IMG/VR virus record: IMGVR_UViG_3300028608_000006
Location: 124,001-188,000 of that record
Direction: 5' to 3' (one strand)
Length of the DNA: 64,000 nt
Part shown: positions 1 through 16,792 of the stretch, piece after piece
Position numbering within the stretch: the stretch's first letter is position 1
Layout of the letters: each line of letters starts with the position of its first letter
Translations under genes and position numbers: made by a program
Notes under the pieces: generated by a model
Told to the model about the DNA's origin: nothing
Seen by the model: only the letters and a program-made list of their open reading frames with translations
Databases searched by the model: none

Positions 1-1252
1 TGACGTTCGTACAGATGAGATCGGCGCTCTGCTTGGTGATACGCTTCTCCAGCGGCATCATGCAGCTAGGGCACTCCTCAGGTGCTTTGAAGAGCTCGGC
101 TTCACCATGCTCGATCACACGATTCAGACGAGGAATCACGTCACCGTTACGGGTAACACCGATGACAGAACCTTTACGCAGCTCCAAAGCAAGGAACTGT
201 TTATAGTTGTCCAGCAGCGTACGAGAACAGATCACCCCGCCGATACGAGTAGGGGTATAGATCCCCACCGGCACCACACGACCAGTGCGAGTTGTGTTCC
301 ACTCGATATCGGTCAGACTGGTTGCCACTTCCACATCTGGATACTTGTACGCCAGCGCCCAGTTCGGGTACTTGTTGGTGACCCCCAGTTGATCTTGCAA
401 GTCAAAGTTATCGACCTTGATCACAATACCGTCAGCAGGCCAGTCCTTGCTGTTGATGTTCTCCCGGATAGCTTCTAGAGACGCCACAGGTGCGCAGTGG
501 AAGCCGAGCAGGGTCAGGTGGTTACGCAGTTGACTGTACTTCTGGAAACCCAGTCGACTGCTGCACGAGTAAGCGCCAAATCGCAGAAGACCTTTCACCG
601 CCGGGTTCTGGTTCTCCGGCAGAGCACGCACCCAACCACTGACTGCGTTACGAGGGGTAGCAGCTTGTTTAACCGCCGTCTCGTTGTACAGTTCAAACTC
701 GTGGTTGGCAATGTGACCTTCACCTCGGATAGAGATGGTGCCTGGCACAGGCACGTTGTGCAGGTCGGTTAACACCGTTGGGATATTCAGGCCAAACAAT
801 GGCAGAGCATGAGTCACATCCTCACCCACCAGACCCGAACCCCGGGTAACCATGGAAACCAGTGGTCCATCCACGTAAGTCAGTTCCAGCGCCAGCCCGT
901 CCAACTTAAGTTCATAGAAGAACTCAGTGTCTTCCGGAAACCGTGCGAGGAACTTATCAACCGCTTCTTGGTTCAGCCCTTTCTTCAGGCTGAGCATTGG
1001 CGAGTCAAAGGTCACCGCTTTCAAGCCTTCATTAGTAGGCTCGTGGATCGGCACAGGTTTGCGGGCAGTCTCGAACAACTCGGCAACTTCCGGGTGTTCT
1101 TCGGCCAACTCTTCGAAACGTTCTACCAGTTTGTCGTAGGCGTAATCGGGGATCTCCGAGGTGTCCTTGTTGAAATACAGATCCGCGTGGTACATGATGT
1201 CACGATTGAGATCGTTCATCTCGGCGAAGATTGTTTTGTGTTTTGCTTTCAT
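1..1252 (-). CDS. ligA: NAD-dependent DNA ligase (partial, runs off window start)
   Basis: Absent from the ORF track, so translated by hand from ATG at 1252: MKAKHKTIFAEMNDLNRDIMYHADLYFNKDTSEIPDYAYDKL...PMLSLKK...YELKLDGLALELTY (KxDG motif I), TRGSGLVGEDVT, IRGE, PRNAVSG, DGIVIKV, PNWALAYKY, TRTGRVVP, GDVIP and the CPSC...C zinc finger. The frame is open to position 2. Confidence 0.97.
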   Translation of the reverse strand, partial: MKAKHKTIFAEMNDLNRDIMYHADLYFNKDTSEIPDYAYDKLVERFEELAEEHPEVAELFETARKPVPIHEPTNEGLKAVTFDSPMLSLKKGLNQEAVDKFLARFPEDTEFFYELKLDGLALELTYVDGPLVSMVTRGSGLVGEDVTHALPLFGLNIPTVLTDLHNVPVPGTISIRGEGHIANHEFELYNETAVKQAATPRNAVSGWVRALPENQNPAVKGLLRFGAYSCSSRLGFQKYSQLRNHLTLLGFHCAPVASLEAIRENINSKDWPADGIVIKVDNFDLQDQLGVTNKYPNWALAYKYPDVEVATSLTDIEWNTTRTGRVVPVGIYTPTRIGGVICSRTLLDNYKQFLALELRKGSVIGVTRNGDVIPRLNRVIEHGEAELFKAPEECPSCMMPLEKRITKQSADLICTNV

Positions 1253-1263
1253 CGAAAAAACCT

Positions 1264-1319
1264 GCAAGCATAAATAAGGGTATATAAGGAGCCTGAGGAT
1301 AGTCCCCAAGCTCCTTATA
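1264..1319 (-). terminator. Hairpin with downstream TTATGCTTGC tail
   Basis: Arms tataaggagc (1283-1292) and gctccttata (1310-1319); on the minus strand the hairpin is followed by CCCTTATTTATGCTTGC. Confidence 0.7.
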
Positions 1320-1321
1320 CT

Positions 1322-1657
1322 TCAGTGCAGTGTACGTGTAGTCGGTGCGCTGATAAACGACTCAGCTGACCCGATGATTCCACCCACCGTAATAACAGTA
1401 GGTCGGTCGAACATCAGGTGTAAATCTAAATGCCACAGGAAACTCCACATCACCGCTGTGTTGTTTGCTTCGTGTTCCATGATCTCAGCGGCGAAACGGT
1501 GTACGGTGGGATGCAACATCATGGACAGCTTCGGAGCCTCGCGAGCATGCCCCATGAGGACATCCATACAAGTCTTGTCAACTACCACTTCATCGGGTGT
1601 TAAATCGAACGCATGCAGAAAACTGCGGTACGTCCAAATCAATTGTTCTTTGTTCAT
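1322..1657 (-). CDS. Degenerate (likely catalytically dead) paralogue of the adjacent nucleotidyltransferase, 111 aa
   Basis: Start moved to MNKEQ (ATG 1657, SD AAGGGG). Aligns without gaps to 1761..2198 over about 55 aa and shares DLH, but the GG and DxD motifs are replaced. Confidence 0.7.
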   Translation of the reverse strand: MNKEQLIWTYRSFLHAFDLTPDEVVVDKTCMDVLMGHAREAPKLSMMLHPTVHRFAAEIMEHEANNTAVMWSFLWHLDLHLMFDRPTVITVGGIIGSAESFISAPTTRTLH

Positions 1658-1760
1658 GCAGTCACCCCTTAGAAGGGTATCCGGTCTGTGGGCGGAGAGT
1701 TCCATTACGATGGTCAACCCAGTCATCAATAACGGTGTAATGGAACCCCACCCCAGAACC

Positions 1761-2198
1761 TTAGGCCATCCGCGCGGTTAGTCGGGGTGACCTCACTAGG
1801 GATTCCAGCTGAACGATCTCCATCAGATCTCGCTCACGCTTTCCCGGTTTACGGTTAGGCATGTTTGCCAGGTGCCGTTTCTGGATTAGCATTTCCCGTG
1901 CGCTGTAACAATACACGCCGTCAATGCATGCTAACCCGGTATCTTCGCTCAATTCGTGTAGATCGATAAACGGATCGTACACTATTCGCGGGCTTACGTT
2001 GTCTTCAATAATCAAATCACGACCTTGCGCGCACCACTTGAATACGCCAGGCTTTACATCCACATCCAGATCTTCGGTTGTCTCACGAACATCCATCATT
2101 ACCAGAGCGCCGCCAGCACTCAGTACTACATGATGCGGAAGCTCACCCAGACTCTCGACCAGCGCTTTGTAACGCGCAATAACCTGATCCTTGTTCAT
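1761..2198 (-). CDS. Minimal Pol-beta-superfamily nucleotidyltransferase (AbiEii/MenT-like signature)
   Basis: SAGGAL-x-RETTEDLDVD fits hG[GS]x9-13DhD; third carboxylate in FIDLH; C-terminal K..R..K.RD helix; SD GAGG. Confidence 0.75.
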   Translation of the reverse strand: MNKDQVIARYKALVESLGELPHHVVLSAGGALVMMDVRETTEDLDVDVKPGVFKWCAQGRDLIIEDNVSPRIVYDPFIDLHELSEDTGLACIDGVYCYSAREMLIQKRHLANMPNRKPGKRERDLMEIVQLESLVRSPRLTARMA

Positions 2199-2613
2199 CG
2201 TGTCGCCTCAATTGCGGAGTGATAAGTGTTGGGGCAATCGCCCTCAGTTGTTTGAAGAATTGACCCGAAGCCCATGCGTTTATGTTTTCGCGGACGTAAC
2301 TACCAAAGAGAGATTCCCTCACAAAATTCTCAAAGGCAACCCGCAGTGTTTCGTCGCATGAACCGGGTGGAGGCAACAACCCTTTATCGCGAACCTTACG
2401 TACCGCTTCCGACAATCGAATGCGGTCAACGTTCATGTCCACGATCCAGGTTGGATAACGCTTGCGTATAACAAAATGCAAGGCACCATGTTCCTCTATA
2501 AAACCAAGGACAATGCTGCTCTTGCGATTTTCAGTTACGGCTTCAACCAGAATTGGCTCAAAGGACCCTTTAAAGAAGTCAGGGTCCTTTAGGAATAAAG
2601 ACTTTAGATTCAT
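2143..2613 (-). CDS. Hypothetical protein (early operon)
   Basis: 156-aa ORF with SD-like AAAGGGTG; its 3' end overlaps the NTase gene by 56 nt. Confidence 0.7.
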   Translation of the reverse strand: MNLKSLFLKDPDFFKGSFEPILVEAVTENRKSSIVLGFIEEHGALHFVIRKRYPTWIVDMNVDRIRLSEAVRKVRDKGLLPPPGSCDETLRVAFENFVRESLFGSYVRENINAWASGQFFKQLRAIAPTLITPQLRRHDEQGSGYCALQSAGRESG

Positions 2614-2623
2614 GCACCCTTTC

Positions 2624-2899
2624 TCAGTGAAGCTGCGTAAGGTAGTTGATGATGTTCATCACGCTCTGTTGCACCTGGACAGTGGCACCAGGGTTGAGCA
2701 TGGTGTAGTTGATGGCACTGCGACCAGAATCGTCGAAGTTCACCAACGCTTGGTTGGAGCCGAAGAACGCGATGATAGCCGTTTTCGGATGACCTGGCTC
2801 CTGTTGGATGTTGACACTGGCGAAACCGGGACCCATTGGGTTCGGTGCGATAGAACCGTCTGCTTGTTCGGCGACGGGGATCTGTACGGGATTGATCAT
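2624..2899 (-). CDS. Hypothetical protein, first gene after the early promoter
   Basis: 91-aa ORF with SD AAAGGA, in a co-oriented operon. Confidence 0.7.
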   Translation of the reverse strand: MINPVQIPVAEQADGSIAPNPMGPGFASVNIQQEPGHPKTAIIAFFGSNQALVNFDDSGRSAINYTMLNPGATVQVQQSVMNIINYLTQLH

Positions 2900-3014
2900 T
2901 ACAATGTTCCTTTAGCTCTTGAAAAGGTGATTATGTCTTCGTTCCATAAACATGAGGCTTAACGGTTCAAATATAACCTAGCTGATCAAGACCCTAAAGT
3001 CCTATCACAGCTAA

Positions 3015-3031
3015 GTAATATAGGTTTCAAA
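3015..3031 (-). promoter_or_regulatory. phiKZ-type early (virion RNAP) promoter
   Basis: Minus strand TTTGA-AACC-TATATTAC matches the phiKZ early consensus (TATATTAC core with upstream TTTaA) and faces a small-gene operon. Confidence 0.75.
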
Positions 3032-3034
3032 TAA

Positions 3035-5500
3035 TTAAGCAATGATGCTGTCCTTATTTACTTCCCCCGTCAAGGTAAGACCCTCGTACCGCATGGCGAT
3101 AACGTTAGGGTTGGCAAACAAACCGTACTGGTTAACATAGTGCGAAACCATGAACAGTTGATTAGGCGACTTCTGCCGGGTGTATTCCTGAACGAAGCTA
3201 AAGAACCTGCCCCGATTAATCTCGTCCAAGTTAACCCCGATCTCATCCATGATCAACGGGTATTCAACCGGATGATACGACAGCATGACAAAGCGGAACG
3301 CCCAGTCAATAATGTCGCGTTCGCCCGCAGAACAATCCGTTACATCCGGAGTCGGTTCAGCATCACCCACGATCACAGGGAACTTGTACGTCAGGTCCCC
3401 GTTCTCTTTACTGCACGGCTTGATAAACAGCGGGCCATTCCAGATCTGCGCAAACAGCGCATTCATGTTGGCACAGACCGCTTTGATGAAGTCACCCATG
3501 AGGCGACCAATAAGACCTTTGTTCGGACACAGACCATCCATGTGGATGTCAATGATCTTCAAGCGACGCTTCAACCGTTGAATGTCGTCCGAGATGGAAT
3601 TCACCACCGCAGTCAACGAACGGTTCTTAATGATGGACGTCATGTAGTGGTCTTTCTCCTCGCTGAGGATACTGATCCGCTCATCCACTTTCAGTTTGAA
3701 GTTCGCTTTACCCTGATTACCGAGACCACGCATGATCTCTTCACGCAGCCCACGCAACCGACCCACATCACGCTGATACGACACGATGTGTTGCTGAGTA
3801 CGCTTCAAGGATTCCAGACGGTCCTTGTAATGGGAGATCTGGTTGTTCTCGACCAGCAGTTCCTTTTCGATACTCGCCAAGTAGATCGCTATATCCAGAA
3901 TGTTGTTCCGGTCCAGCAACCCTAAGCGCGTGTCTAAGAGGTTTTGCTCGACAGCCAGTGCCTCTTTCTTCGCCAGCAAGAGATAACGACCCATGAAGGT
4001 CTCAAGGGCATTCAGCAGCCGGTTTGAATCGGTTTTGCCGATATCGTACTCTTTAATGAAAGAAGGCAGCACAACACAGTGGTTATTCTCCCGCACAAAC
4101 CCAATCAACTGGTTCATGCTCAGATACCACTCCGCATCGTTCTCAATCTGCTTAGCGAGAACTTCCTGTGCTTTCTCGGTGCGTTCTACCCGAGTCGTCA
4201 ATCCTTCTTTCTGCTGACGCAATGCCGCTAGCTCAGCCGGCGTCACCCCCAACTTAAACTCGTGGGAACAATCTGGACAGTTCACGTTTTCAGCCGAGTC
4301 GTAATGATTCAGCTTGTGGGTGATGTCGGTCAGTTCGTTCTTCCAGTGACGCAACGAGTTGCTAAGTTCTTCCTGCTCACGGAGCCAACCTTTATAAGTC
4401 GCCCCATTGACAGTAGGATCGCTCACAACGGTCAATCGCCCCAAGAACTCACGGAAGCCCGGGATAACCAGTTCAAGGTTGTTCAGCGGGATCTCAGGGT
4501 CATTGAAGATCGGATACTGAGCCAGCAGGTTGTTGTAATCCGCCAGTTCCTCATTCACCTTCGCCAAGTCTTCACGGATATGATCCGCTTGTACCTGAAA
4601 CACTTCTGGATCCGCTAAGAACTCTTCCAGTCCGTCCAGCACCCCGGCGTGTTCCGCGATTACCCGTTGCAACACACCCGCTTGTTCTTGGTGACGTTGC
4701 ATGAGTTCCGTGGTGAAACCGATGGCCGTCGCTACCTCTGATTGGGTGTAAATAATCCCGCTCAGTTTATTAGTAGTTAATTGGTCCACCATGCGATTGA
4801 AGTCTTGGATCTTGGTGTTCAGATCCCGATCAACCTGAATGCCTTCCAGACTACCACGCACCAGCAGTGAGTCGCGAAGTTCCCCTTCGATGGTCTTAAT
4901 ACGTACTTCAAGTTCATCGATCCCGTACTCGTTAATCTCAGCGAGCTTACGGTTCTCTTCGGTGTAACGCGCAATCTGGTTCTTGATCGCCGCTTTCAAC
5001 TCGTTACGCTCAGTCCGGAGTTTGTTCCAGACCCCCAATGCATAATCCGTATCGTTCGGATACAGTTGCATGAAAACTTCTTTACGCTTACCCGGGGACA
5101 TCAACGACAGCAGATCAGTAATCCGCAGCCCACTCAAAACACGGTTGAGGTTATAGTCCAAACGGAAGTAACTCGCGCACAACTCTTTCTGTACCGCGCC
5201 AGTGCCGTTCGGGTTGAGTTCTTTCCCGTTCAGTTTAAAGCTGTGGCCGTTACTGTCATGCGGATAGGAATCAACGATGAAGTGTCGATCGCCTAATTTG
5301 AATTCGCCGTACTTACGGCCACCCGGGAGATAGTTAGCTTTCTCCGGAGCAAGAGGATTGGCTTCTTTCAGAATGCTGCTCTTACCACTTCCGTTTTTGG
5401 AGATAAACAGATTGATCATGTGGGGAGTAGAAAGGTTAACACTCTGGATGCCACTCTTTGTAAGGGGAATGTACTTTTCTAAGATGAGTTTAAGCAACAT
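3035..5500 (-). CDS. sbcC: SbcC/Rad50-like SMC-family ATPase
   Basis: Walker A NGSGKSS, long coiled coils, central CPDC zinc hook, signature CSAGE, Walker B LIMDE, and the H-loop VSH. Confidence 0.95.
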   Translation of the reverse strand: MLLKLILEKYIPLTKSGIQSVNLSTPHMINLFISKNGSGKSSILKEANPLAPEKANYLPGGRKYGEFKLGDRHFIVDSYPHDSNGHSFKLNGKELNPNGTGAVQKELCASYFRLDYNLNRVLSGLRITDLLSLMSPGKRKEVFMQLYPNDTDYALGVWNKLRTERNELKAAIKNQIARYTEENRKLAEINEYGIDELEVRIKTIEGELRDSLLVRGSLEGIQVDRDLNTKIQDFNRMVDQLTTNKLSGIIYTQSEVATAIGFTTELMQRHQEQAGVLQRVIAEHAGVLDGLEEFLADPEVFQVQADHIREDLAKVNEELADYNNLLAQYPIFNDPEIPLNNLELVIPGFREFLGRLTVVSDPTVNGATYKGWLREQEELSNSLRHWKNELTDITHKLNHYDSAENVNCPDCSHEFKLGVTPAELAALRQQKEGLTTRVERTEKAQEVLAKQIENDAEWYLSMNQLIGFVRENNHCVVLPSFIKEYDIGKTDSNRLLNALETFMGRYLLLAKKEALAVEQNLLDTRLGLLDRNNILDIAIYLASIEKELLVENNQISHYKDRLESLKRTQQHIVSYQRDVGRLRGLREEIMRGLGNQGKANFKLKVDERISILSEEKDHYMTSIIKNRSLTAVVNSISDDIQRLKRRLKIIDIHMDGLCPNKGLIGRLMGDFIKAVCANMNALFAQIWNGPLFIKPCSKENGDLTYKFPVIVGDAEPTPDVTDCSAGERDIIDWAFRFVMLSYHPVEYPLIMDEIGVNLDEINRGRFFSFVQEYTRQKSPNQLFMVSHYVNQYGLFANPNVIAMRYEGLTLTGEVNKDSIIA

Positions 5501-9562: not shown

Positions 9563-12500
9563 TTACGGCAACAGCTCCGCTGCCCGCAGGAAGACGAATG
9601 TACCCGCGTCCTGTGGCAGACCGGTGCTGATTGGAATGATACCGCCCTCACGTGTGTAGCTGAGGAGGTACTGACCGACCATCAAAGGTTGGTGACGAGT
9701 GATCGAGAGGATCTGTTGACCGTTCGTCACGATCGTTGCCGCTTTCAGCAGGTTGCCCGACTTACGCAGTTTGGTTAGGGTCACCAGGTATTTAGGCTGG
9801 TCATCTTCCACCGTTGCGTAAATGTAGAACGTTTTGTTTTGTGGGGCAGGGTCGATGTCACGCAGATCAATGGAACCACCCGGCATAGCGTACGCCGTAC
9901 CATTCACCATCATCCGGATGTTGTCTTGCAGGAAGAGAACCCAACCTGTTTCCGGATAAGCCGATCCAAGCATGTAGTAGTCAATGCTCGTGTCAGCATT
10001 GGTCTTCTTCACGATTGCCGCAGCTCCCCCGGTGTTAACGTAAGGCTGAGGGTTGGCGGGGCTGATTGTGGTGTTGTCAGGCGTTGTTCCGCCTAGGGTA
10101 ACGTCAAGCATACCCACCTTAGGGATCATGGTCACTATGTCGCCGTACCCCCAGCTAGCATTGCCCCCGTAGACACCCGTCACTTTGTTAGTGGCGAGAT
10201 CAACATCAAACAGGCAAAGCTGCTTGGTGTTAATGGTGCCCGTCGTTACCGTCGAGTACGGAGCCAGCACGTAGACTTTCAGCTTGGTGCCGTCGCGATA
10301 GATCGACACGATGGACTTGGGTTTGGTCCCGCCGTTAACCAGCAGGTTGGTCTCACCCATCTTCACGTTGACCGCCGTACGGACATGCGGAGGCGCATCC
10401 AGCACCGTGATATCTTTGATCCAGTGCACCCCAGGGTGATCGGCGTTAGGCGCTTCCACCACCGGGGTGAACAGAACCACCTGAGTCCGCGTCTGAGACG
10501 CATCGGCGTCAAAGAAGTAGATCAGAGCCAGACCAACGTTGAGACCCTTGAACATCCCACCCGATTCGTTCCCCAAGATATTAAAGCTGAAAGCCCAGTA
10601 CTTGGTGTTTTGGAATTCAGCAGGGATCATCGCTTTAAGCTTGTCGATGATGTTCTGACGAATGCCGTAGAACGTGTCAGCCGCATACGTGGCCTTCTTC
10701 AGCCCGTTATCCAGCGTCCGAGTCACCGTCCGTGGAAATGACAGCAGCACATTATTTCCCGCCGGAGCCCTCAGCACGTTTGTGCGCGGAAGCGTCTGAC
10801 TTGCAGTAACGTAAGACGACCATGCACACGCACTGAAACTAGTGCTCCCACATTCCACTCCACCAGCCGTCAGCTCCGCCGCCGTACCGGTTATCCCGAT
10901 GACGATGTCGCTATGCGGAAGGTTGGTTTCATAGACGGTGTTCGAGAGAGGTCGGGTCTTCAGATCAGGCAGGTTCAAGTTCGTAATTCCCGGCCGCACC
11001 TGATACCCGCCCGAGACAAGCCGGAGGTACATCTTCCGGTTACCCGACTTCATGTCCTCCGCCCCGTACAACTCCCCATCCGGCTCATACGTCATGGCAG
11101 CTGGATAGGTGCCGCTGAGGATAGGAGAAGACAGCACTGGGTTCAATACACGACGAAAAGTCAGTGGTGAATCAGTGACCTTCATGGAACCGGACAAGAC
11201 CTGTGCTGCTGAGGGTTTGTCTTTCCAGCGTGTTACTTCAACAACGGTCGGGAAGGCGTTACCATCCGCAATCGTACCCGTTACGAGGTCGCCGTTATCC
11301 AGCATCACAGTACCACACTGCGTCGCTTGGAACGTAGAGTTGTAAAGGTATCCGTAATGCAGGTCCATGTACTGCGCACGTTCTGTAGCTGTGGTATCCG
11401 TGAACCCAACGCTGATGGGAGGAGCCTTATTGATTTGAGTCAACACGCCAGTGGCCGGATTGATCTCATACCCGATAGTGCTGATCAGACGAAGGTTGAT
11501 GTTCTCCCCTACGTCGGAGTAGAGCACGACGTACCCCATGATCAATTGCAGGTAACTGACAGCGTTATTCCCTGGCTTAGGGCAAGAGATCGTTAAAGAC
11601 CGCCCGCTCTTAGTCATGGAGGTAACACCCTGACGGAATGTCCAAGGACCGGTTTTAATGATCTTGTTGGCACCATCCCGAACGATCGGGTTAGGAACCA
11701 GCGAATCAGCCGCCGTAAACAAGGTTCCGTTCCAGTCAGTATAGGTAACCTTGAGTGGTTGCCAAGTAACTGGCAGGCCAGCCTGTACGTCAGCAACTGG
11801 AACCCGGAAGAACGCGTAGGCATCTGTGTAAGCTGCCCCGAAGTTCTGAACCAACACTAGGTAATCGCCCATGTGGTGAATCATCGCCCGGCTTTGACTG
11901 TTGTACGGGACATTACTGAACAGTTTGTTTACTTCGACCATGTTGCATTTAACGAAACGGTGAGCCGATGGGTCAAACGTAGCGTTGGTCAGGCACAGGT
12001 ACCAATCTGTCGAACTCGGGCGTCCGACCATCAGCACTTTGTGGTTACTACCACCCATGATCAGTGTCGGGTTAACCCCGATAGACGACAGCGATGGCGG
12101 AGCGTACTTAAAGCCGGTGTAGATGATCTTGCCACCTGGTTGGTCATAGTTCTCTACGTACGAATAGTAGAGACCTTCCTGACGACCATCGAAGTGGTTG
12201 GAGAGCATCATGAGAAGTCCGTTGTTCTCTAGGCAGAAACCAGCGGTCTCAAAGGTGGCACCCAAACCTTCAAACGAACCATCGATGTTCGGCGGGATAT
12301 AACTGTCGCCGGCAAAACGGCTAACCGGCATGATACCCTGATACATTGCGGCATCAGTATCCGGCTTGTACGTCTTCGCCAGCTCAGCCACACCGAATGG
12401 CGTACTGAACGCATCACCCCGTACACCCGCCAGTTCTTCCGCCAATGTAGCAGTGGGGTAGTTGGCGTGGTTACCGAGGAGGATGTCGAACTTGGTGGTG

Positions 12501-13150
12501 CCATGCGGAACGCTGTAGTTCTCATCGTGAGCTTTCAGCTGGGCCAGACGGGTTACCTTTGCGGCCTTCAATCGATCGAACGCACGACGCGCCGCCGCAC
12601 TGACCTTGTTGTTGGCTTCCGGGTCACGGGTCAGAGAGACCTTACCCAGATAGATGAAGAACCACGTCAGCTCGTACCAGTCCGAGATCTCGGTCTTGAT
12701 ACCGTGCATGTGCAGCGAAGGCGGTAGGGTTGGAGGAACGTCGAACACCTTGGACCAAGTCAACGGACGAACACCGTTCTTGATCTTGTCCATCCAAGCT
12801 TCGAGGTCGTTACGGGGAACGAAGTAGGCGCCAATGCTCTGATAGTCAATCTTGATCTGAGTGTTGGCGTCCAGAATGTTTTGAGGCAGCCGAATGAACG
12901 TCTTGATCGACCGACCCGTTACTTCACAGAAGGGAACGAACTCTTCTTCGAGGAAGTAGTCACGGTTCAACTTCATGACCGCGCCACTTTGGTTGTAGAC
13001 GGTTACTTTGGCGGGTTCAGCGAAGAAGGGCGAACCATTTGGAATAACCCACTGACAAGTTTTGTCGGTGAGCTTAACGATTTCCCCGACAATAGTGTTG
13101 ACGGGTTCAGTGCCATGAATGTCAAACTTTACCAGTCTGATAGGTTCCAT
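9563..13150 (-). CDS. Large tail virion protein (phiKZ gp145/146-like)
   Basis: 1195 aa. Motifs W..V..VPPTLPPSLHMH, HGTTKFDILLGNHAN, PPNIDGSFEG, and C-terminal YPETGW...GSIDLRDID. Confidence 0.75.
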   Translation of the reverse strand: MEPIRLVKFDIHGTEPVNTIVGEIVKLTDKTCQWVIPNGSPFFAEPAKVTVYNQSGAVMKLNRDYFLEEEFVPFCEVTGRSIKTFIRLPQNILDANTQIKIDYQSIGAYFVPRNDLEAWMDKIKNGVRPLTWSKVFDVPPTLPPSLHMHGIKTEISDWYELTWFFIYLGKVSLTRDPEANNKVSAAARRAFDRLKAAKVTRLAQLKAHDENYSVPHGTTKFDILLGNHANYPTATLAEELAGVRGDAFSTPFGVAELAKTYKPDTDAAMYQGIMPVSRFAGDSYIPPNIDGSFEGLGATFETAGFCLENNGLLMMLSNHFDGRQEGLYYSYVENYDQPGGKIIYTGFKYAPPSLSSIGVNPTLIMGGSNHKVLMVGRPSSTDWYLCLTNATFDPSAHRFVKCNMVEVNKLFSNVPYNSQSRAMIHHMGDYLVLVQNFGAAYTDAYAFFRVPVADVQAGLPVTWQPLKVTYTDWNGTLFTAADSLVPNPIVRDGANKIIKTGPWTFRQGVTSMTKSGRSLTISCPKPGNNAVSYLQLIMGYVVLYSDVGENINLRLISTIGYEINPATGVLTQINKAPPISVGFTDTTATERAQYMDLHYGYLYNSTFQATQCGTVMLDNGDLVTGTIADGNAFPTVVEVTRWKDKPSAAQVLSGSMKVTDSPLTFRRVLNPVLSSPILSGTYPAAMTYEPDGELYGAEDMKSGNRKMYLRLVSGGYQVRPGITNLNLPDLKTRPLSNTVYETNLPHSDIVIGITGTAAELTAGGVECGSTSFSACAWSSYVTASQTLPRTNVLRAPAGNNVLLSFPRTVTRTLDNGLKKATYAADTFYGIRQNIIDKLKAMIPAEFQNTKYWAFSFNILGNESGGMFKGLNVGLALIYFFDADASQTRTQVVLFTPVVEAPNADHPGVHWIKDITVLDAPPHVRTAVNVKMGETNLLVNGGTKPKSIVSIYRDGTKLKVYVLAPYSTVTTGTINTKQLCLFDVDLATNKVTGVYGGNASWGYGDIVTMIPKVGMLDVTLGGTTPDNTTISPANPQPYVNTGGAAAIVKKTNADTSIDYYMLGSAYPETGWVLFLQDNIRMMVNGTAYAMPGGSIDLRDIDPAPQNKTFYIYATVEDDQPKYLVTLTKLRKSGNLLKAATIVTNGQQILSITRHQPLMVGQYLLSYTREGGIIPISTGLPQDAGTFVFLRAAELLP

Positions 13151-13216: not shown

Positions 13217-16200
13217 TTAAGGGAGAAGCTCACCAGCCGTTAGCCAAGGGATCTGACCTTCGGTGTTCGCCAGACCAGAGGCCGCCGGGATACTGTTACC
13301 CCGTTTAGTCTCGGTTACCCGGTGACCATCCAGAGCAAACACGTTAAACCGCTCGATGGTTAAGATCTGACGGTCGTTCGTTACCGCCGTTCCCACCCAC
13401 AGTTGATAGTTGGTCTCCAACCGCTTGTCACGGGAAACCTCATACACCGGAATGCCGTTATCCAGCTTGGCATAGATGTAGAAGGTCTTCCATTGTGGAT
13501 TCGCATCGATATCCCGCAAGTCGATTGAACCCAACGGTAGCACGTACAGCGTGCCGTTGAAGATGACGTTGATGTCCGTCTTGAAGAAGATCACCCAGCC
13601 GACTTCAGGATACACCGACCCAACCAAGGCGTTGTTAGCGATACCCTCCGAGATAGTAGCAGCACCACCCGTTGACAAGTCCCAACCCCGCATCACCTGA
13701 ATCCCGTTATCCGGGCTCATCATGATACCACCACCCCGACTGGTGTGCTCCACATACGTTTCGTAGTTCCAGGCGTGCGAAGCGGTACGGTCGTTGATGG
13801 TGAAGGTATGGTCCAGAGAGTAGGCGTCACCAGGAACCTGTGCCATCACACCTGTGCCGTGATACACCGTCAGCTTGTTGCCTTCGAGGTAGTACTGAAC
13901 GCGCATCGGACCGTGGGTGGTTTGCGGAGTTTCCCACTGGATCCCGTTACCGAAGATCCGCAGGATGTTAACCCCGGCACTTGGTTTCCGCACATGCACC
14001 TTGTTGATCACAGTGAACCCAGTGACCACGTAACGACCGCCGCTGGTCGTGTAAGTAGGCTGGATCGTCATGAACGTGTGGAACAAGGTGGTCTGGTCTG
14101 GTGTGCCGTCAGCATCGGTGTACTGAATAGACACGGTCACCGGTAGCCAACCAAACTTCGCAGGTAGGTTGGAGAACGTAGGATCACACACCGTCACATG
14201 ACGAGCACGACCACGGTTCATGATGGCCGGATATTCCACCTGAGCTTTCAGTGCCTCAACAATCCACTCTTGGTACAAGAGTTCCAACGTCGGAACAATG
14301 GTAATCGTACCATCTGGTTCAGTGCGACGAGTGTGCTGTTGAACAAGGATGATATCCCCGGCCGCTACACCACCAGGCCATGCGGTACCCTTCATCTCGC
14401 GGTCAAAACTCTTCTTCTGTGAGTTAACACAGAATTGAGATTCACCCACATCCACACCGTACGTACTGAGATAAGCCGACGGCACCACCACTGTTGCTCC
14501 GCCCAAACCGAACGGTGCATTCACCTTGCGGATGTTGTTGGTCAGTGGACGAGAAACAATGTTGCTCATGAACAAGTTCTGAATGTCCGACCGATAAGCG
14601 AAACGCCCCGATACAGTCTTCCAGTACAGTTCGAGCTGCGTTGCGATGGTTCGGTGAGCAGCAATGTAGAACTCACCACCTGGGTTGTACAGCAATGCCC
14701 GCGGGTTAATCCCCGACTCTGTTGGTGTTGTTACCGTTTCCGGAATCAAACCAGCGTAATAACCGAAAGGGAGTTCGGACCCGTTGCCCCAGAACTTGTT
14801 CACTGTAGCAAAGCGGGTGTTGGTGGTGGCGATCTTGCAGGTGAACGCCGCACGTGGATAACCTGTAAACCCGTAAGCGCCGGCCGACACAATCCGCCCA
14901 TCATCCAAGATGTTACCACCTTGCGCCTGATAGAAGTACACCTGATAGGACATGCTGGATGCGTGACGATACTGAGCCGGGATGATGTTGCCGTTACCCA
15001 GCCCGAAGTTAGCATTCCATGCCGCCGTCCGGTGTTTGTAGCTGAACACACCCGTATTCGGGTTGAAGTCGTAGTTCAGCTCCTGCATGTAGTCGATTGC
15101 GGCGTTCACCGTTTCACTGACGTAAGCGAAGTAATGCGCACCCAGAAACTTCACAGCATAGCTGTTAGGATTGTTGGGGTTCTGCGCTACGTGGGTGATC
15201 AGGCTCCGATACAGCCCGATGGCGTTGTTACAGGGATAAGGCGAGAATGTCAGGATAGCTTTTGTTTGATGACCGTTGCCGTCAACTACCGGCTGGTACC
15301 AGCGGAAATACGGACTGTTGTTCCACTGCAAGCCATCCGCGTCCAAGAAGGAAACGTTCTGTCGAACAGGAGTCACATCAATCTGTGCTTTGATGCTGGA
15401 GATTGGTACTCGGAAGAAAAACTTATAACGCAAATCCGAAAACTGGTTCCATGTATCTGACGGCACGCCTGTGGAAGCTGACAGGATCACGTAGACCCAA
15501 TCACCCATCACGGCAACACTGATCAAGTTGAACAGTTCCGTCACGGTGTGTGCGCCAGGGTTCGTCGAGATCGCATCGACCAAAGGCCGCAGGTTGATCT
15601 TCGAGTAAACGTGCTTTGCCGGGTCCAAAGAACCGTTGGTCATCCCGATGTAGAAGATGTCCTTAAAGCTGTCGCCCACCAGAATGCATTCGTTACCGCT
15701 ACCCTGCGCAATACGGTCAACGCTGGCATTGTCCGGGTCAAAACGAGGGTGCTCGTATTTAAAGCCAGTGTACGTCAACAAGGCGCTTCGTTCTTCAGGA
15801 TCCGTAAGAACAGAGAAGTACAGACCACGGGTACGACCGTCCATGCGGTTCCACAGCACAGTGATCGAACCGTCGCTCTCCAAGCACATGCCTGCGGTTT
15901 CGATCACACCCCCGATGCCTTCAAACGAACCGTCAATGTTGGGAGGAATGAAGTTGGTGTTACCGAATTGAGCCACCGGGAGCATCTTCGCTTCCAAGAA
16001 CTCGTCAGCGTTGAAGCCATGGTACTCGATGATGCTCTTCAGCTCTTGAGGACGCAGGTGCATGTCCTGACGCGCTTGCAGGATGTTGGCTGGTGTTGCA
16101 GTGGCGAAGTTGTCCACCTTGTCCAGCTGCACGTCCAGTGCGGTCAAACCGTGGGCGTCGTACGACTCAGAGTGACGAACCAGGAACTGATCCAGCATGT

Positions 16201-16792
16201 TGCCGTAGACACCGATGTACCAGTCGACCAACTCCATGAAGTGGGTCAGACGACGTTCGATGATGTCCAAGCCCTGTTGTTCGATCAACACTTGCAGCTC
16301 GCTCAGGAAGTCGATCGTGTCTTGGAAGGCAACGATGTCGTAGAGTACGCTGTGGGTGTGCAGGGTTGGCGGAAATACCGAAGGCTTGTTGGACAGGTTC
16401 TCCCAGTACACAGGACGGTCGTCATTAATAGCGTCAATGATCAACGCCATCATGGTGCTGTCGAGCAGAGGGAATTCCCCAAGGACGTGGTAAGAGAGGG
16501 TCCCTTCGGTGATCTCTGGTTTCTTGAGAGTCACCAGACACGCCACTGGTTTACCTACCAGTTCCGTCAGGCGCGGCATGATTCGGAAGATCTCGTAGTC
16601 TTCGTTCAAGATCATGGGCTCGCCGTTGGGGTGTTTCAGTTTCAAGCTTTCTACAAAGAACGGTGAATGACGAGGCACGATGACACGAGTAAACACACCG
16701 GCAGCCACAGAGAACGGTTCGTCGTAGATCTCGTTCTCTGGGTTGCTACGGTTGATATCGGTCCTGTATTCCTGAACAATGGGGAATTGCAT
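13217..16792 (-). CDS. Large tail virion protein (phiKZ gp145/146-like), paralogue of 9563..13150
   Basis: 1191 aa. Motifs WENLSNKPSVFPPTLHTH, HGLTALDVQLDKVDN, PPNIDGSFEG, and YPEVGW...GSIDLRDID. Confidence 0.75.
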   Translation of the reverse strand: MQFPIVQEYRTDINRSNPENEIYDEPFSVAAGVFTRVIVPRHSPFFVESLKLKHPNGEPMILNEDYEIFRIMPRLTELVGKPVACLVTLKKPEITEGTLSYHVLGEFPLLDSTMMALIIDAINDDRPVYWENLSNKPSVFPPTLHTHSVLYDIVAFQDTIDFLSELQVLIEQQGLDIIERRLTHFMELVDWYIGVYGNMLDQFLVRHSESYDAHGLTALDVQLDKVDNFATATPANILQARQDMHLRPQELKSIIEYHGFNADEFLEAKMLPVAQFGNTNFIPPNIDGSFEGIGGVIETAGMCLESDGSITVLWNRMDGRTRGLYFSVLTDPEERSALLTYTGFKYEHPRFDPDNASVDRIAQGSGNECILVGDSFKDIFYIGMTNGSLDPAKHVYSKINLRPLVDAISTNPGAHTVTELFNLISVAVMGDWVYVILSASTGVPSDTWNQFSDLRYKFFFRVPISSIKAQIDVTPVRQNVSFLDADGLQWNNSPYFRWYQPVVDGNGHQTKAILTFSPYPCNNAIGLYRSLITHVAQNPNNPNSYAVKFLGAHYFAYVSETVNAAIDYMQELNYDFNPNTGVFSYKHRTAAWNANFGLGNGNIIPAQYRHASSMSYQVYFYQAQGGNILDDGRIVSAGAYGFTGYPRAAFTCKIATTNTRFATVNKFWGNGSELPFGYYAGLIPETVTTPTESGINPRALLYNPGGEFYIAAHRTIATQLELYWKTVSGRFAYRSDIQNLFMSNIVSRPLTNNIRKVNAPFGLGGATVVVPSAYLSTYGVDVGESQFCVNSQKKSFDREMKGTAWPGGVAAGDIILVQQHTRRTEPDGTITIVPTLELLYQEWIVEALKAQVEYPAIMNRGRARHVTVCDPTFSNLPAKFGWLPVTVSIQYTDADGTPDQTTLFHTFMTIQPTYTTSGGRYVVTGFTVINKVHVRKPSAGVNILRIFGNGIQWETPQTTHGPMRVQYYLEGNKLTVYHGTGVMAQVPGDAYSLDHTFTINDRTASHAWNYETYVEHTSRGGGIMMSPDNGIQVMRGWDLSTGGAATISEGIANNALVGSVYPEVGWVIFFKTDINVIFNGTLYVLPLGSIDLRDIDANPQWKTFYIYAKLDNGIPVYEVSRDKRLETNYQLWVGTAVTNDRQILTIERFNVFALDGHRVTETKRGNSIPAASGLANTEGQIPWLTAGELLP

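Follow-up and report, generated by a model that had tools for sequence, protein, structure and literature searches.

The C-terminal domain of the AbiEi antitoxin is a nucleotidyltransferase (NTase)-like domain that binds the AbiEii NTase and switches it off. AbiEi was reported to induce, upon binding, the auto-phosphorylation of AbiEii at T65, a residue equivalent to T39 of MenT1 and S78 of MenT3 (bioRxiv 10.64898/2026.01.19.700257). Giant-virus poly(A) polymerases combine a catalytic NTase domain with an NTase-like duplicate that is non-catalytic (PMC4402537). Here, two neighboring paralogous genes, referred to as A and B, are described in a stretch of 64,000 nucleotides (hereafter the window) that corresponds to bases 124001-188000 of a 231,788-bp IMG/VR virus record (IMGVR_UViG_3300028608_000006). 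A first-pass annotation, made from the letters of the window alone, had proposed that they form an enzyme/pseudoenzyme module. The two genes are the following.

1761..2198, minus strand: A, a minimal NTase of the Pol-beta superfamily (145 residues) with intact motifs and a predicted fold.
1322..1657, minus strand: B, a catalytically dead paralogue of A (111 residues), whose true start is the ATG at 1657.

The explanation that we favor, with moderate confidence for the whole of it, is that A is an active mini-NTase, that B is a pseudoenzyme maintained by selection, and that the dead copies found in this family bind an A-type NTase or its target.

All the Pol-beta residues that had been read in A (G29-G30, D43/D45 and D79) are present in its translation. 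They are found in the motifs S27-A-G29-G30-A, T41-E-D43-L-D45-V-D47 and I-D79-L-H81, and the C-terminal helix carries the motif Q106-K-R...R116...K120-R-E-R-D124 (motif IV). T41, two residues ahead of D43, is near-invariant. The NTase fold, whose prediction had been set as a check of the proposal, was obtained with AlphaFold2 from a 17-sequence alignment with a predicted local distance difference test score (pLDDT) of 91.5 and a predicted template modeling score (pTM) of 0.85. The model displays the Pol-beta hallmarks: an hG[GS] motif (S27-A-G29-G30) with [DE]h[DE]h 9-13 residues further on (D43-L-D45-V) and a strand at residues 44-48, a third carboxylate carried by a subsequent strand, and an NTase core of alpha-beta-alpha-beta-alpha-beta order. 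Foldseek searches with this model returned NTases from each collection, i.e. giant-virus and poxvirus poly(A) polymerases on top of the PDB matches together with MenT1, TM1012 and JHP933, AbiEii-annotated and other NTase clusters in the AlphaFold DB, and ANT(2'') and the lincosamide resistance protein among the Swiss-Prot models. The folds closest to A are those of TM1012, ANT(2'')-Ia/LnuA and the MenT/AbiEii toxins. As regards the MNT antitoxins of HEPN-MNT (type VII) systems, MNT chains were absent from the 50 best structural matches, and no HEPN gene is present in the unit to which A belongs. A has the layout of a complete NTase and is very probably active in this phage.

A and B belong to a phage-specific family of stand-alone mini-NTases, phrog_12854, that is not placed by sequence in Pfam or among solved structures. 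A scores against phrog_12854 with E 4.5e-28 over residues 1-128 and B with E 0.0073 over residues 1-50, and neither has a Pfam match at E <= 1. Together with a third paralogue of the same genome (C, see below) and with the homologues gp120 and gp121 of Pseudomonas phage EL, they received no Pfam, NCBIfam or PADLOC family assignment, save a weak AbiEii match for C. Family profiles built from 17 and 93 sequences found no match among PDB sequences. An exhaustive profile search collected 429 representative clusters at E <= 1e-3, mostly of 125-170 residues. Among the best 150, the pattern G[GSA]...Dx[DE] is kept in 118 of the 128 members of 125-170 residues. In the alignment of 93 members, G29 never varies, and conservation reaches at least 90% at A31, R38, D43, D45 and D124; each of the 22 clusters with 43% identity or more to the A protein of the window retains D43 and D/E45. 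The genomic contexts of the sampled family members are phage-like. In a protein atlas, the cluster of A itself is 98% viral and lies near DUF6036, DUF2204, AbiEii and Aminoglyc_resit clusters. Structural relatives were also found in BFVD for other chimalliviruses, namely RP12, 201phi2-1, PhiEaH1 (two copies), Noxifer, RSF1 and Phabio.

Some distant members carry additional domains. P0092, P0156 and P0106 (loci L040-L042) are fusions with a GNAT acetyltransferase domain, to which P0106 adds a Nudix domain; the locus of P0092 is phage-like and adjoins phiKZ_IP and tail-tube genes. These fusions possibly hint at the class of substrate. They would suit a reading of A as a small-molecule NTase of the ANT(2'')/Lnu kind that modifies an antibiotic-like compound, a metabolite or a signaling molecule and not RNA, and the ANT(2'') match of A is as good as its MenT match. 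Nevertheless, A has no PF10706 match, its K...R...RD helix and T-x-D-x-D loop resemble those of AbiEii/MenT, and other structural neighbors of A occur as fusions with RNase HII or RNase III. Antibiotic resistance would moreover be of no obvious use to a virulent phage, and a small-molecule substrate is considered quite unlikely.

The relationship of B to A was confirmed in the detail in which it had been proposed. The start of B is placed at 1657 because the length of its orthologues is constant at 110-111 residues and because a Shine-Dalgarno sequence, AAGGGG, precedes it (upstream sequence AAGGGGTGA); the ATG at 1657 and the length of 111 residues are conserved in nine orthologues, as is the Shine-Dalgarno sequence. 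BLASTP aligns A and B without gaps over residues 1-58, with E 6e-6 over 98 residues. Profile comparison by hhalign gave a probability of 94% (E 1.4e-7) with the first alignments and of 96.3% (E 1.5e-9) once 23 A-type sequences were compared with 9 of the B type, and the hidden Markov models of the two groups match each other reciprocally. The similarity between A and B is far beyond chance. The substitutions announced for B were all found at the expected residues: T29-C30-M31 replaces G29-G30-A31 of A, and P42-K-L-S-M-M47 replaces E42-D-L-D-V-D47. B keeps D78-L-H80, equivalent to D79-L-H81 of A, and ends at a position aligned to residue ~103 of A, so that the K/R/D helix of motif IV is missing. 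The same losses were observed in all nine B orthologues, in which GG is changed to T/S/G-C and DxD to K/R/A-x-S/T/A, and from which motif IV is absent.

The structural similarity of the two proteins is weakly predicted. The predicted secondary structure of B is congruent with that of A (helix-strand-helix-strand over residues 1-50 and a strand at 77-81), while in three dimensions B is modeled poorly, its AlphaFold2 model, built from a 6-sequence alignment, having a pLDDT of 63.8 that falls below 50 from residue 83. A search of the Atlas with B by features and structure returned nothing usable (pLDDT of the Atlas model, 0.44), and tblastn found no match to B in cultured phages.

A poor model, the loss of all catalytic motifs and of the C-terminus, and an identity of only 47% where A retains 85% are what a functionless, decaying remnant of a duplicated gene would display. 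This reading is refuted at the level of selection and is scarcely credible. Between the window and its close relative L021 (93% identical), the ratio of non-synonymous to synonymous substitution rates (dN/dS) stands at 0.078 for B as against 0.077 for A, and it is 0.095 for B between L021 and L020. The reading frame of B is open, over 106-111 residues, in the nine orthologues and in a more distant B-like gene of locus L044, with no frameshift or stop, and at the greater distance at which identity has dropped to 47% the length is still 110-111 residues. The blocks AFDL, V-x-DK-x-CMDV, HRF, SF and a C-terminal TLH are invariant. B is under purifying selection of the same strength as A. A maximum-likelihood tree recovers the B sequences as monophyletic (100/100), on a stem of 3.4 substitutions per site that falls on the A side and not with A' (see below) or C, its exact attachment point there not being fixed by the tree. 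Because of this very long stem and of the later constraint, B is seen to have gone through a burst of change followed by constraint. By homology, catalytic loss and selection, B is therefore classed as a pseudoenzyme and not as a pseudogene, its parental fold being predicted only weakly.

The pair of the window is better understood from its relatives. In phage EL and twelve EL-like metagenomic genomes, the gene following the A orthologue is a second paralogue, A' (EL gp121, 144-164 residues), that keeps GG(G/A)AL, the Thr/Ser, the first Asp and motif IV. In 14 loci, the A' motif reads D-x-N in 13 and A-x-N in one, the residue at position 45 always being N. The order A-A'-B-ligase was found in the relatives L019, L020 and L004 (85%, 81% and 74% identity, respectively), the order A-B-A' in the more distant L044, and the order A-B in the window and in L021. 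In a DNA alignment, the A' coding sequence is cleanly missing, and the downstream hairpin and the leader of B are retained. An independent rhizosphere contig covers positions 1620-4348 of the window and contains the A-B junction without A'. This deletion is regarded as real since the independent contig has the same junction; an assembly artefact, which was considered, was rejected given that contig and L021. That B might be the orthologue of EL gp121 was also rejected: BLASTP finds no alignment, the comparison of B with the A' profile gives a probability of 20% (E 1e-3), and L019, L020, L004 and L044 hold A' and B together, hence the two are distinct. The tree likewise supports the A, A' and B groupings. 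A and A' (EL gp120/gp121) make up the ancestral array of EL-like chimalliviruses, and the pair of the window is the remainder of an older, larger array. The enzyme/pseudoenzyme pair of the first-pass annotation thus keeps its two components, an intact A and a dead B, and loses its status as a self-contained pair, the window retaining an A-A'-B array whose middle gene was deleted. B cannot be taken as the old tandem partner of A, a position that belongs in this clade to A' with its DxN motif.

A third paralogue is encoded ~11 kb outside the window.

Genome G000 114301-114741 (locus L002 1468-1908), minus strand: C, a third paralogue (147 residues) with intact GG and D-L-D.

C belongs to another subfamily, clustering with P0038 (99/93 support), and has weak PADLOC AbiEii matches (E 3e-4). 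It is absent from EL. In the genome of L004, which still has A', C is broken by TGA and TAA stops; in the genome of the window, C is intact and A' is gone. A is accordingly one of two intact copies in the genome. Tandem paralogy as a general habit of the family was considered and rejected, the distant loci of P0038, P0045 and P0092 being single-copy.

This history bears on the possibility that A and B form a toxin-antitoxin-like module for addiction or superinfection exclusion, with A as a MenT-like toxin and B as its antitoxin. The fold of A is like that of MenT1/MenT3, C has its weak AbiEii matches, the genes are small, adjacent and co-oriented, and the antitoxin domain of AbiEi is itself NTase-like. 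However, the enzyme gene comes first, ~100 nt with a hairpin separate the two genes, and no winged helix-turn-helix (wHTH) regulator accompanies them. The conserved neighbor in the clade is A' and not B, and A' was lost here while A was kept. Some relatives possess a dead A-type protein only at the locus, and addiction of the plasmid kind is nothing that a virulent jumbo phage requires. Such a module is very unlikely.

Catalytic loss was found to recur in the slot of A itself. Several of the closest representatives of A lack the catalytic carboxylates, and their loci place them in the A slot. L043 (3001-3447) and L045 (3001-3441) each have a single family member between the upstream genes and the ligase, reading T-S-M-L-V-A and T-D-M-V-N-I-S, respectively. 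L044 has a dead protein in the A slot (3001-3459), a B-like gene after it and, further on, an A' with DxN, none of the family members at this locus having the full dyad. The dead A-slot proteins keep their full length, the His after the position of the third carboxylate, motif IV and the C-terminal TAR tail. Because the catalytic residues were lost repeatedly (in A', in B and in A-slot orthologues) and the rest is conserved, the dead copies would work by binding, and the family probably has a selectable, non-catalytic binding role throughout.

The same observations suit a reading in which the dead copies act alone, as decoys or sponges against host factors and untied to A. Their targets could be NTase toxins of the host, nucleotide signals or effectors that attack tRNA, and A would be an ancestral enzyme that is useful on some hosts. 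The catalytic losses are independent and recurrent, with length, motif IV and tail kept even where the dead protein is the sole member. A' keeps GG, T41, D43 and motif IV, yet always has N at position 45. Copy number and gene order also vary widely among close relatives, as is typical of counter-defense accessory genes. On the other hand, B has lost the residues for nucleotide binding, no host target is known, and the tandem co-transcription with A is conserved. Decoys acting independently of A are considered rather unlikely.

The surroundings of the pair suggest how it is expressed. Over positions 1..3035 of the window, the minus strand carries in succession the end of an SbcC-like gene, a gp119-like gene, an open reading frame (ORF) of 156 residues, A, B, a hairpin and a ligase gene. 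The features other than A and B are listed below.

Stop codon at 3035, minus strand: end of the SbcC-like gene.
3015..3030, minus strand: promoter-like motif TTGAAACCTATATTAC, between the stop codon of the SbcC-like gene and the first gene of the unit.
2624..2899, minus strand: gp119-like gene (91 residues; phrog_16812, E 2.4e-8), first of the unit.
2143..2613, minus strand: ORF of 156 residues, overlapping the start of A by its last 56 nt.
1701..1744, minus strand: stem-loop between A (A' in the relatives) and B, with arms TCCATTAC and GTAATGGA.
1282..1320, minus strand: terminator-like hairpin after the stop of B and before the ligase, with 18 pairs followed by a T-rich run.
2..1252, minus strand: NAD-dependent DNA ligase, N-terminal 417 residues (phrog_3869, E 7e-114), extending beyond the start of the window.

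The position of the gp119-like gene is unchanged in EL and in all relatives examined. The ORF of 156 residues has no Pfam or PHROG match; its counterparts in the relatives have 126-156 residues and a variable C-terminal overlap with A, and it is absent from EL. The four genes from the gp119-like gene to B would form one unit, running from the promoter motif to the conserved hairpin.

The promoter-like motif TTGAAACCTATATTAC is homologous to a 'putative phage promoter' annotated in front of EL gp119. The 231.8-kb genome contains 20 copies of its core, CTA[CT]ATTA[CT] flanked by a conserved TTTCAA, and 19 lie on the minus strand, like the genes of the unit. The extended form TTTCA[AG][AG]CCTA[TC]ATTAC (TTTCAAACCTATATTAC-type) is found in the window at ~3015-3030, ~36416 and ~37113 (minus strand) and at 17 further sites of the genome, and the 11-mer ACCTATATTAC occurs 7 times where ~0.1 are expected. 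In jumbo phages encoding their own RNA polymerase (RNAP), early promoters were described to share a conserved AT-rich motif of ~10 nt (PMC7598289). The genome-wide motif is likely the early-promoter motif of this phage. Since it resembles the early-promoter motifs of jumbo phages, early expression of the A/B unit, as proposed initially, is a reasonable inference and remains plausible with an AT-rich motif found genome-wide and ahead of the operon. Small contigs of a soil metatranscriptome map on B (1439-1658) and on the stem-loop with the 3' part of A (1681-1948), weakly supporting transcription of the two genes, with DNA carry-over being possible.

The spacer between A and B measures 103 nt. 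The stem-loop at 1701..1744 can be extended to ~13 bp with a loop of ~28 nt. RNAalifold predicted 16 pairs from five loci, 5 of them with compensatory changes. This stem-loop is unique in the window, where none is expected, and it outlasted the loss of A'. The absence of a T-run behind it sets it apart from a classical terminator, and it may be a processing or regulatory site. The stem of the hairpin at 1282..1320, GGAGCTTGGGGA...TCCTCAGGCTCC, is invariant in five related loci; this hairpin probably ends the unit ahead of the ligase, which would make of the latter a separate transcription unit.

The ligase adjoins B, as had been pointed out, and its orthologues in the relatives contain Pfam DNA_ligase_aden/OB domains; the neighborhood is only positional, and a functional link through co-transcription was discarded as unlikely given the conserved hairpin between B and ligA. 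The neighbors of the unit (the SbcC-like nuclease subunit, the NAD-dependent ligase, RNase H and a DHH phosphoesterase) could suggest that A and B serve DNA metabolism, for instance as a terminal transferase on DNA ends. Besides the hairpin, the conservation of gene order throughout the genomes of these phages makes adjacency uninformative, A has no DNA-binding fingers or thumb, and its best fold matches are not DNA polymerases. A role in DNA metabolism is highly improbable.

The phage itself is recovered from soil, rhizosphere and wetland metagenomes, and no near-identical DNA was found in cultured phages. The nearest cultured relatives of A are in Pseudomonas phage EL and its kin (48% identity), then in the Ralstonia phages RP12, RP31 and FLC; the two genera concerned, Elvirus and Ripduovirus, are assigned to Chimalliviridae by NCBI. 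The genome encodes a PhuZ tubulin (E 1.6e-17) and split RNAP beta pieces (E 7e-22 and 6e-19). The phiKZ chimallin, used as a marker, has no pairwise match in the genome, and chimallin was likewise not detected in the EL group in published work (PMC11448039). Since its nearest cultured relative is an Elvirus and since PhuZ and split RNAP beta genes are present, this phage is probably an EL-like member of the nucleus-forming family Chimalliviridae, in agreement with the nucleus-forming phage surmised initially.

Other features of the record were observed in passing. Two adjacent genes of ~1190 codons on the minus strand of the window, 9563-13150 and 13217-16792, are each covered over their whole length by a match to phrog_3573 and have virion/tail-protein matches in common at the N-terminus, which corresponds to a tandem duplication of a large structural gene. 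An identical context of 56 nt is found near both ends of the record (genome positions ~100 and ~231759), which points to terminal redundancy or to circular permutation of the assembly, although linear is the class given to the record. Inside the SbcC-like gene, positions 3378-3421 of the window are matched by short contigs from two soil samples over 44 nt only, at ~90%. These contigs continue into unrelated sequence, and the segment seems to be common to other organisms or phages.

The mechanism that we favor for A and B can be formulated as follows. A would most likely transfer a nucleotide from a nucleoside triphosphate to a hydroxyl group, and the acceptor that we would guess first, by analogy with MenT, is an RNA 3' end such as that of a tRNA. 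B would derive from an A-type copy that diverged very fast, shedding its C-terminal helix and the residues that bind the nucleotide and the metal, and would then have been held by purifying selection as a pseudoenzyme with a job of its own. By analogy with the AbiEi domain and with the dead domain of poly(A) polymerases, the dead copies would most likely serve an A-type NTase, or the target of the latter, as partners or regulators devoid of catalysis.

Several points weigh against this explanation. The dead A-slot relatives weaken the simple view of an enzyme accompanied by its inhibitor. Dead forms may act without an active partner, since the window lost A', the conserved partner in the clade, and since some loci have a single dead A-type gene. 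Contact between A and B is hypothetical; the score of the predicted A+B complex, 0.07, counts neither way. The fold of B gave no significant Foldseek match in the PDB, the top one being an MNT chain at E 0.8 obtained from a weak model. PF08843 (AbiEii) matches none of the 93 family members, and A has no PADLOC AbiEii match. Finally, early timing is deduced from the promoter motif and not from transcripts. Of the AbiEii/MenT-type comparison made initially, the fold neighborhood and the intact NTase motifs were thus retained, and the profile match and an AbiEi-type partner are missing.

A bolder form of the binding explanation may be envisioned, in which B, A' and the dead A-slot proteins would be the viral equivalent of the AbiEi domain, docking on an NTase to shut it off or to retarget it. 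The docked NTase may be A or C of the phage, or a host defense toxin of the AbiEii/MenT type, and a possible mechanism, again by analogy, is the forced auto-phosphorylation of the conserved Thr/Ser ahead of the DxD strand. This form is speculative and we hold it to be improbable as it stands; if true, it would define a new class of anti-defense or self-regulatory proteins, born repeatedly by catalytic loss.

Nucleus-forming jumbo phages shield their DNA, while their mRNAs and the host translation machinery remain exposed. RNA-level attack and counter-attack should hence matter to these phages. If A modifies tRNA or other RNA ends, it would bring a new host-takeover or repair activity to chimalliviruses; if the dead copies neutralize host NTase toxins, they would be a new anti-defense class. 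The EL-like clade in any case offers a serial enzyme-to-pseudoenzyme series (intact, DxN, dead and truncated) for the study of NTase-fold pseudoenzymes, and this series allows asking whether phages use the AbiEi-type logic by which an NTase-fold domain controls an NTase.

Compared with the MenT/AbiEii toxins, A is a structural neighbor, and it resembles them in the loop and strand with T41-x-D43-x-D45 and in the helix with K...R...RD; K107, R108, R116 and R123-D124 of motif IV are present and conserved in A, as is T41. The latter follows the S/T-x-D-x-D spacing of S78/D82 in TglT/MenT3 (PDB titles), a putative equivalence drawn from spacing and from the position in the loop described in the preprint cited above. 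In AbiEii/MenT, inhibitory auto-phosphorylation takes place on this Ser/Thr, two residues ahead of the first Asp. Contrary to these DUF1814 toxins of about 190-300 residues, A has 145 residues and no PF08843 match. The dead partner is here a recent paralogue of the enzyme, and the pair resides in a virulent jumbo phage and not in a bacterial defense locus. Upstream of A, no AbiEi/COG5340- or MenA-type antitoxin was found, the gp119-like gene and the ORF of 156 residues having no such match by Pfam, PHROG or HTH. TM1012, DUF6036 and DUF2204 are near A in fold, A and B themselves having no Pfam match; these proteins are functionally uncharacterized and the match therefore names a fold neighborhood and not a function. 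ANT(2'')-Ia and LnuA are also near A in fold, with no relation at the sequence level (no PF10706 match) and no antibiotic context. The closest described locus is that of phage EL, where gp120, the A orthologue with 48% identity, occupies the slot between gp119 and LigA and is followed by its tandem paralogue gp121, the A' protein, both being annotated as hypothetical proteins. In contrast to the window, EL has neither B nor C, and its gp121, which keeps GG, the first Asp and motif IV together with DxN, has no orthologue in the window. The poly(A) polymerases (Mimivirus R341, Megavirus Mg561 and VP55) are the top Foldseek PDB matches of A, and the model of A aligns to both halves of these polymerases, at residues 51-208 of 4wse_B and 223-426 of 4p37_A.

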